Assembly (NCBI RefSeq): GCF_001194135.2
Contig: NC_068982.1
Location: forward strand, 169,015,887-169,079,886
DNA: 64,000 bases
Source: Octopus bimaculoides
Lineage: Eukaryota
Direction: 5' to 3'
Shown here: positions 2,280-2,440 of the stretch, one piece after another
Layout of the letters: every line of letters begins with the position of its first letter
Position numbering within the stretch: the stretch's first letter is position 1
Position numbers and translations under genes: made by a program
Notes under the pieces: generated by a model
What the model was told of the DNA's origin: nothing
Seen by the model: the letters and a program-made list of their open reading frames with translations, nothing else
Database searches by the model: none

Positions 2280-2440
2280 CTAAACAGGGAGGGTTGGGTG
2301 GGGGCCAAGCATGGCCCATCCCCATCGTCATTAGTGCTCAGACAACATGATGGGCGACTAAAAGGAAGCCACAGAATTAGGCAGTGCACCCACTCAGTTA
2401 GGACAACAATAATATCAGTTAGAATGTGGAGTAGCAACAA
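2280..2440 (-). promoter_or_regulatory. Intronic splicing-regulatory segment with an alternative upstream 3' splice site (AG at 2359-2358) that adds a premature stop
   Basis: Sense cttccttttag|TCGCCCATCATGTTGTCTGA; 78-nt extension reads V-A-H-H-V-V-stop; several CTAAC/CTAAT branch-like motifs upstream. Confidence 0.6.

Follow-up and report, generated by a model that had tools for sequence, protein, structure and literature searches.

Intron 9 of the DHX15/PRP43 gene of Octopus bimaculoides, carried on the minus strand of a 64,000-nucleotide stretch of contig NC_068982.1 (positions 169,015,887 to 169,079,886; hereafter the window), probably ends in a conserved unproductive-splicing switch with three outputs: use of the productive acceptor (AG2), use of an upstream 'poison' acceptor (AG1), and intron retention, the choice between them being apparently gated by RNA structure. 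This region corresponds to a real, ancient unproductive-splicing module that looks like an old built-in brake on the amount of DHX15. Strong support exists for AG1 as a true alternative 3′ splice site that relatives of Octopus use in vivo, for the premature stop that it brings in each species studied and, from sequence comparison, for its conservation far above the intronic and even the synonymous background.

The DHX15/PRP43 orthologue is present as exons 2-11 at positions 1-24000 of the window (the last exons lie past position 1), and the 623 residues encoded there are identical (623/623) to those of XP_014781058.1 from O. bimaculoides (P0363). The features of intron 9 and its flanking exons are as follows:

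7747-7938, minus strand: DHX15 exon 9 (APETLMRAL...ITAMLS), which ends with the first base, G, of a split codon (tblastn and splice-site reading)
7746-2280, minus strand: intron 9, 5467 nt (splice sites)
7741-7746, minus strand: 5′ splice site of intron 9, GTAGTA, without G at +5 (donor sequence)
2376-2380, minus strand: branch site 1, CTAAT, 20 nt 5′ of AG1 (CTAAT/CTAAC in coleoids, Haliotis and Pecten; CATAAC in oyster)
2360-2375, minus strand: U-rich pyrimidine tract of AG1, TCTGTGGCTTCCTTTT (U count)
2358-2359, minus strand: poison acceptor AG1, cttccttttAG, 78 nt 5′ of the productive AG (sequence)
2280-2357, minus strand: the 78-nt extension included upon AG1 use, 100% identical in three coleoids
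2338-2340, minus strand: premature in-frame TGA (reading V-A-H-H-V-V-stop)
2330-2336, minus strand: putative branch site 2, CACTAAT, inside the extension, ~51 nt 5′ of AG2 with no intervening AG
2296-2323, minus strand: predicted hairpin H2, located between branch site 2 and the AG2 tract (GGGG-ATG-GGGCCA-tgct-TGGCCC-CCA-CCC; minimum free energy and centroid folds)
2282-2304, minus strand: pyrimidine tract of AG2, C-rich and U-poor (5 U of 20)
2280-2281, minus strand: productive acceptor AG2, gtttAG (sequence; used in the Sepia pharaonis mRNA L005, where exon 9 is followed by TCCCGCAG)
2157-2279, minus strand: DHX15 exon 10 (VPQCFVRP...HAFKQ; tblastn and splice-site reading)

The upstream acceptor had been proposed as a poison site in a first-pass annotation made from the sequence alone, and the coordinates given there for cttccttttAG (2359-2358) hold on the minus strand. 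Joined to the last G of exon 9, the AG1 extension reads GTC GCC CAT CAT GTT GTC TGA, again as proposed, and the stop codon at 2340-2338 lies well ahead of later junctions, 181 nt before that of exons 10 and 11 (>50-55 nt). Because of this distance, the AG1 isoform is predicted to undergo nonsense-mediated mRNA decay (NMD). The annotation had also described the end of the intron as GC-rich and non-repetitive, and indeed the GC content is 57.7% in the last 78 nt of intron 9 and 49% in 2440-2280, versus 30.9% elsewhere; no other 78-nt window of the intron exceeds 46%, and no second copy of the poison-site region exists within the window. The AG1 tract is the more U-rich of the two, as had been noted, with 11 U in positions -22 to -3, on par with the constitutive acceptors of DHX15, versus 5 U of 20 for the AG2 tract, a count lower than that of any other DHX15 acceptor in the window.

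The description of the branch sites stood only in part. All three CTAAC/CTAAT motifs listed upstream of AG1 are present (2422-2418, 2401-2397 and 2380-2376), but only the proximal one is retained in nearly all molluscs, the middle one being inside a conserved stem arm (see below), and a fourth, CACTAAT at 2336-2330, had been missed. This fourth motif is likely the branch site of AG2; its ACTAAT core is invariant in all molluscs and also present in amphioxus and Owenia. The sequence between it and the AG2 tract folds into H2, plausibly a real hairpin, whose GGGC...GCCC core occurs at the same place in 11/11 species folded. A third AG is found 8 nt downstream of AG2 inside exon 10 (2272-2273), and its use would cause a frameshift; exon 10 starts TCCCGCAG|TG, and this AG is there because the glutamine codon is CAG, never CAA, in 12/12 species.

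Taken alone, the configuration of AG1 is not above chance, since three AGs in intron 9 combine at least 9/12 pyrimidines with an upstream CTAAY motif and nearly any intronic extension holds a stop codon. The site is far above chance because it is both conserved and used in transcripts. A cephalopod protein cluster gathered with the 623-aa DHX15 query gave the loci of Argonauta hians (L001 and L002) and Acanthosepion (Sepia) pharaonis (L004); loci of Pecten (L006), Haliotis (L007) and Crassostrea/Magallana (L013 and L014) were compared as well. Conservation above intronic background in other species, which the first-pass annotation had named as a test of its proposal, is observed at once in the coleoids: among Octopus, Argonauta and Sepia, none of the 113 aligned intronic sites is variable (0/78 in the extension and 0/35 upstream of AG1), versus 16 of the 123 sites of exon 10 in the same three-way alignment. 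The longest invariant run spans 135 nt (2392-2258), 113 of them intronic. Gene-wide, synonymous third positions are invariant in 38% of 565 shared degenerate codons (30% for four-fold sites), and at the 38% rate the probability of 113 invariant sites is P ~1e-47. In whole-gene blastn comparisons, the other exon blocks reach at most ~15 nt into the acceptor-side intron; the exon 10 block alone extends 129-155 nt upstream (from 2434 with Argonauta and from 2408 with Sepia) and is the best conserved, with 94% identity to Sepia versus 77-84% for the other blocks. The classical criterion for ultraconserved elements (at least 200 bp at 100% identity) is missed by this run of 135 nt in three coleoids.

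The same signals are kept in other molluscs. In Pecten, Haliotis and Crassostrea/Magallana, the intron interrupts the same codon and branch site 1 lies ~20 nt 5′ of the acceptor 16-mer TGGCTTCCTTTTAGTC, which is identical (16/16) in Pecten and Haliotis and takes the form CATTCCTTTTAGTA in oyster, where TTCCTTTTAG is kept. Also retained in these genera are ACTAATG.CG.TGGGG..GGGC, the C-rich tract and TTTAG|TCCC. A covariance model built from the mollusc alignment scores 77-134 bits on all molluscs. Because mollusc extensions vary between 76 and 90 nt in length, their frame is not conserved, and in each species a stop codon follows 3-11 codons after AG1. Among all mollusc, amphioxus and vertebrate sequences read, the stop comes 2-11 codons past the AG, and in Owenia the extension causes a frameshift; overall, extension lengths range from 60 to 90 nt and the encoded peptides are unrelated. 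A coding extension or a selenocysteine reading was rejected on these lengths, which are often out of frame, and on the unrelated peptides.

Transcripts or annotated isoforms from three molluscan lineages use the upstream AG, which establishes it in relatives as the real alternative 3′ splice site that had been proposed. The cuttlefish protein P0367 (539 aa) terminates in ...ITAMLSVAHHVV, i.e., ...AMLSVAHHVV, and derives from a Logan RNA contig (L003, run SRR9970001) that is 99% identical to the S. pharaonis mRNA. In this contig exons 1-9 are spliced, and exon 9 is then joined to TCGCCCATCATGTTGTCTGAGCACTAAT, which starts at the base following the orthologous AG1 in the S. pharaonis genome. The contig ends 28 nt beyond the exon 9|AG1 junction, at the point from which 31-mers are no longer specific to the spliced path, CAG and TAG having the same final two bases, so this end corresponds to a merge with unspliced reads and not to missing support. 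In oyster, the tail of P0453 (ITAMLS-VLT*) corresponds to G|TA TTG ACT TGA after the orthologous AG in both Crassostrea/Magallana genomes. In limpet, the RefSeq isoform X2 of Patella vulgata (XP_050395941.1) and a GenBank model of P. caerulea end with ITAMLS-VYDVTMFAGY*, so that an AG1-type isoform is already emitted, without comment, by database annotators for Patella.

Transcripts that retain intron 9 are common in oyster, scallop and limpet. Eight oyster transcript proteins, from contigs of 2.5-3.2 kb, read into the intron (two of the tails checked against the genome are exact matches), as do Pecten P0467, Patella isoform X3 and a model of the remora Echeneis. An exact look-up of the intron/exon 10 open reading frame (ORF) in assemblies gave no record. 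The donor GTAGTA is suboptimal because it lacks G at +5, a trait found in most species (GTAGTA, GTAGTC, GTAATA or GTAATG).

Part of the conserved region upstream of AG1 can pair with elements located further 5′ in the intron, which form the following features:

3245-3315, minus strand: conserved element E2, ~0.9 kb 5′ of AG1 (collinear blastn; Octopus, Argonauta and Sepia)
5441-5472, minus strand: conserved block 3, octopods only, complementary to the 5′ half of E2 (collinear blastn with Argonauta)
3239-3267, minus strand: 5′ arm of predicted stem S1, TGGCTGTGCACCCTCTCATTGTCATAACT, in the 3′ half of E2 (RNAduplex)
2380-2407, minus strand: 3′ arm of S1, GTTGTCCTAACTGAGTGGGTGCACTGCC, 28 nt directly 5′ of, and partly covering, branch site 1 (RNAduplex)

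The predicted energy of S1 in Octopus is -30.3 kcal/mol, versus -21.0 ± 2.4 for shuffled arms (z -3.9, reached by 0/200 shuffles), and the orthologous arm of Sepia gives -28.4 kcal/mol versus -18.5 ± 2.3 (z -4.3). The core of the 3′ arm, GTGCACTG, is retained in Haliotis and Crassostrea, which have complementary arms of their own ~75-130 nt 5′ of AG1 (z -5.8 and -3.5, respectively). In each of these four, S1 beats 199-200 of 200 shuffles; of the six molluscs compared, it is significant in four. Its flanks are lineage-specific yet pairing (TGAG/CTCA, GTGGCAG/CTGCCAC and CTCCG/CGGAG), and in cephalopods the duplex reaches over branch site 1, e.g., TTAGGC/GCCTAA in Argonauta. Within 4.4 kb of intron, the 5′ half of E2 pairs best with block 3, at -41.9 kcal/mol versus -30.3 ± 2.6 for shuffles in Octopus and -49 in Argonauta. 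Neither E2 nor block 3 is a repeat within the window; the possibility that E2 is a dispersed repeat was rejected, as it is single copy there, with one chance 12-mer at 43078.

These data suggest how the switch could operate. The upstream module (CTAAT, U-rich tract and AG1) would behave as a normal-looking strong acceptor that adds 78 nt with an early stop; because of this stop, the HA2/OB-fold part at the C-terminus of the protein is missing from what the AG1 product can encode. The productive module downstream is unusual, with an ACTAAT ~51 nt from AG2, a putative G/C hairpin in between and a C-rich, U-poor tract. Any share of the pre-mRNA going to AG1 or left unspliced would be lost, by NMD or nuclear retention, and this share would therefore set the output of DHX15. 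In S1, the upstream element would pair with the 28 nt directly 5′ of branch site 1 and, in cephalopods, with this site too; the stem would mask the poison branch site and keep the poison site off by default, and H2 would shorten the distance between branch site 2 and AG2. The sensor might be DHX15 itself; general spliceosome or U2-associated factors are equally possible.

Several points weigh against a structure-gated brake of this kind. The evidence for AG1 use comes from relatives only and from assemblies that carry no abundance, and the rules of NMD in molluscs are assumed from those of other animals. In Argonauta the best partner of the S1 3′ arm is the orthologous element, yet the duplex is not significant versus shuffles, and no S1 was detectable in Pecten. 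Covariation in S1 was judged by eye and is limited to few lineages because the arms are invariant within coleoids, and for H2 the z-scores are weak, with little covariation by RNAalifold. S1 could also have a helper role for branch site 1, like the 'zipper' stems of yeast, which aid branch-site use. Finally, the feedback would be positive if DHX15 acted here as it does with SUGP1 and SF3B1 in human cells, where loss of DHX15 or SUGP1 is reported to raise the use of cryptic upstream 3′ splice sites, partly mimicking mutant SF3B1; a negative loop requires that DHX15 reject the atypical productive module, or open S1 or H2.

With regard to the signal to which the switch would respond, one tentative candidate, for which we would claim somewhat less than even chances, is cross-regulation by spliceosome capacity, in which the availability of U2AF or SF3B1/U2 snRNP, the G-patch protein RBM17/SPF45 or C-tract binders would be sensed, and the supply of DHX15 would follow the splicing load. 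The two competing modules differ in tract chemistry (U-rich versus C-rich), and the weak 5′ splice site and frequent retention of intron 9 fit this explanation as well. Knockdown of RBM17 raises the amount of DHX15 protein in mouse cerebellum and in HEK293T cells (PMC6292215); this is a lead only, and the effect could be post-translational.

Direct negative autoregulation, in which high DHX15 would favour AG1 or retention and low DHX15 would favour AG2, through unwinding of S1 or H2 or through discard of spliceosomes assembled on the suboptimal productive module, is possible, albeit doubtful. DHX15 is a 3′-to-5′ RNA helicase and a spliceosome-discard factor, the conserved duplexes have U-rich single strand on their 3′ side, and the productive module is atypical in its distant branch site, hairpin and U-poor tract; many splicing factors described in the literature regulate themselves in this way. 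On the other hand, nothing in this analysis ties the DHX15 protein to the site, no report on DHX15 autoregulation was found in the literature searched, and, should AG1 behave like a cryptic site, the increase in upstream cryptic 3′ splice sites reported after loss or mutation of DHX15 would point to feedback of the opposite sign.

It is quite unlikely that the conserved block serves only the constitutive splicing of exon 10, through its distant branch site, hairpin and enhancers, with AG1 use and retention being noise. The odd productive module may require extra sequence, the 3′-most 45 nt are those shared most widely, including with amphioxus and vertebrates, and AG1 use is known from assembled or annotated transcripts. 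Against this, selection would purge rather than freeze a decoy AG that is harmful and has a perfect tract and branch site, and yet TGGCTTCCTTTTAGTC and branch site 1 have been kept for >500 million years (My) by our own estimate; moreover, conservation in vertebrates begins exactly at an upstream AG, and in three mollusc classes the AG1 isoform reaches a level sufficient for assembly or annotation. It is very improbable that the block codes for something different (an intronic small RNA or antisense feature, or a DHX15 protein truncated at its C-terminus yet functional), for although it is a GC-rich, structured and ultraconserved island in an AT-rich intron, and the 539-aa product would retain the RecA domains (Pfam), its conserved positions are strand-specific splicing signals, it has no snoRNA boxes and no Rfam match on either strand, its fold as a small-RNA precursor is no better than shuffles (z -0.56), and the tail peptides (VAHHVV, VLT, VYDVTMFAGY and VMMLFDL) are unrelated, with extension lengths that differ in frame. 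The Rfam searches gave no relevant match in the whole window or in a sensitive scan of 2100-5600, and none at the gathering threshold or at E ≤1 in 2100-3400.

The position of intron 9 is identical in all of the 12 species compared and is thus common to molluscs and to Owenia, Nymphon, Branchiostoma, Saimiri and Poecilia; this set includes one mammal (Saimiri), with Nautilus, chitons, echinoderms, cnidarians and a second mammal lying outside it. The first-pass annotation had suggested that vertebrate DHX15 carries similar sequence before the same exon. This is supported in part, since Saimiri (squirrel monkey) and Poecilia (guppy) share a conserved, AG-bounded block of ~77 nt before this exon, but its match to the mollusc model is weak. 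The vertebrate block begins exactly at an AG located 76/77 nt upstream (AG|GCCTTGTTC...) and ends with GGGCCCATACCAACCTTGTTTAG; as in the coleoids, this exon block is the only one of the gene that extends upstream. Reading from the vertebrate AG leads to a stop after 9-10 codons, and no vertebrate transcript using this AG was found. In amphioxus, the last ~26 nt are common with primates, and CCCTCCAG|TTGAGTGA occurs 60 nt upstream.

Similarity between the mollusc and chordate intron tails is modest. Their alignments reach z ~3-4, with the orthologous intron usually ranking first by a narrow margin. With default filters, the mollusc model gave zero matches outside molluscs; with filters off, its top match within intron 9 fell at the orthologous site in three species, weakly each time: Saimiri (13.1 bits, E 0.037), Poecilia (E 0.17) and Owenia (E 0.086). 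Nothing significant was obtained in amphioxus and Nymphon. These filters-off matches include a GTG(C/A)ACTG-like box 5′ of the AG. Common descent of the vertebrate block and the mollusc element is therefore possible, the alignments being suggestive only. A bolder proposal, in which the element would predate the protostome-deuterostome split as a structure-sensing autoregulator, DHX15 remodelling S1 or H2 or rejecting complexes on its own atypical productive site, such that the productive/poison ratio would read helicase activity from molluscs to humans, appears unlikely to us.

In Saimiri, the region 5′ of the vertebrate AG (L008, ~45050-45110; CCTGCCCTGCCC...GCTCTG) has a strong complementary partner ~1.8 kb upstream (46845-46885); this duplex (-43.4 kcal/mol, z -4.1) was not used, as its conservation could not be checked. 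Two gene models differ at the same exon: in Nymphon striatum (P0007; L012, ~7205-7264), 19 aa, EFWPWSFWHLLGLLVQHSL, are inserted at the exon 9/10 junction via the AG of a branch-like GACTAAG, probably an annotation artefact, and in the beetle model P0050 exon 10 is skipped entirely.

The other end of intron 9 is repetitive in Argonauta hians, where it begins with a minisatellite of ~3 kb (L001, 27740-30691) made of 36-41 copies of a 55/77-nt unit. This unit combines the final ~21 nt of exon 9 with (CT)n and a CAG|GTAGTA donor that is intact; ~5 copies are present in the second Argonauta locus (L002, 25689-25995) and one in Octopus (window 7771-7671). Elsewhere in the window, a SINE-like repeat family (i.e., resembling short interspersed elements) occurs at 8476-9070, ~15190-15490 and 63834-63992; the Argonauta loci, too, contain dozens of its copies, in either orientation. 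Motifs of mariner/Tc1-type transposases (HPPYSPDLAP...) were detected in two ORFs, at 24438-24914 (plus strand) and 46483-47052 (minus strand), which are probably decayed transposon copies, one of them within a DHX15 intron. A long low-complexity ORF rich in Ser, Asn and Thr (259-267 aa) lies at 50567-51370 on the plus strand, with overlapping ORFs in other frames. Assembly gaps at ~43100-43610 and 51720-51920, flanked by (TA)n-like repeats, bring the total of N to 721.

DHX15/Prp43 takes spliceosomes apart and proofreads them; it also takes part in ribosome biogenesis and has a central place in the SF3B1/SUGP1 mis-splicing axis in cancer. In the literature searched, we found no account of the control of its dosage. 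An acceptor of this poison type, frozen over hundreds of My, would offer a mutable handle on this dosage, through AG1, the two branch sites, S1 and H2, and the locus could serve as a natural reporter of the competition between 3′ splice sites and branch sites. If the vertebrate block corresponds to the same device, it would be a candidate site at which to adjust DHX15 levels by antisense targeting. More generally, the locus suggests that unproductive splicing of core spliceosomal enzymes, and not just of SR and hnRNP regulators, can be deeply conserved in invertebrates.

Among known systems, intron 9 resembles the detained or retained introns of RNA-processing genes in its weak 5′ splice site and in the existence of otherwise spliced transcripts that contain it; unlike these introns, it also has a discrete alternative acceptor, nuclear detention being putative here. 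The putative position of H2 between branch site 2 and AG2 recalls systems in which RNA structure controls the choice of 3′ splice site (hairpins, zipper stems and 'RNA bridges'), and the long-range complementary boxes beside branch site 1, with their lineage-specific arms, are similar to the RNA bridges; in contrast with these systems, the function of the DHX15 stems is putative, and their covariation is weak (H2) or judged by eye (S1). Another related element is USSE of the U11-48K and U11/U12-65K genes, an ultraconserved switch for minor-spliceosome autoregulation (PMC3584512). Both systems combine a gene for a spliceosome component, an ultraconserved intronic element and an upstream 3′ splice site that the element activates, leading to unproductive mRNA; USSE is conserved across phyla, as the DHX15 element may be. 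In USSE, U11 binds tandem U12-type 5′ splice-site motifs, whereas the DHX15 element consists of an acceptor, branch sites and predicted stems; a U12-type mechanism was rejected for intron 9, which has no RTATCCTY motif anywhere.

Unproductive splicing through conserved poison exons or sites, i.e., alternative splicing coupled to NMD, is known for SR proteins, hnRNPs, SNRPB, RBM10 and SMNDC1 (PMC11357089). DHX15 shares with these genes a splice choice that introduces a stop in a splicing gene, and a nucleotide conservation higher than that of the neighbouring coding sequence over very long distances. It departs from them in being a core DEAH helicase and not an RNA-binding regulator, with putative NMD coupling and feedback, and in that the extra sequence is a 60-90-nt extension from an alternative 3′ splice site in place of a cassette exon. 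In the literature searched, DHX15 was nowhere described as being regulated through alternative splicing and NMD; an annotated human NMD isoform, or a mention in other papers, is possible. Conserved poison splicing in splicing genes is well known; what appears to be new is the locus itself, together with its stems and with how deeply it is conserved in invertebrates.

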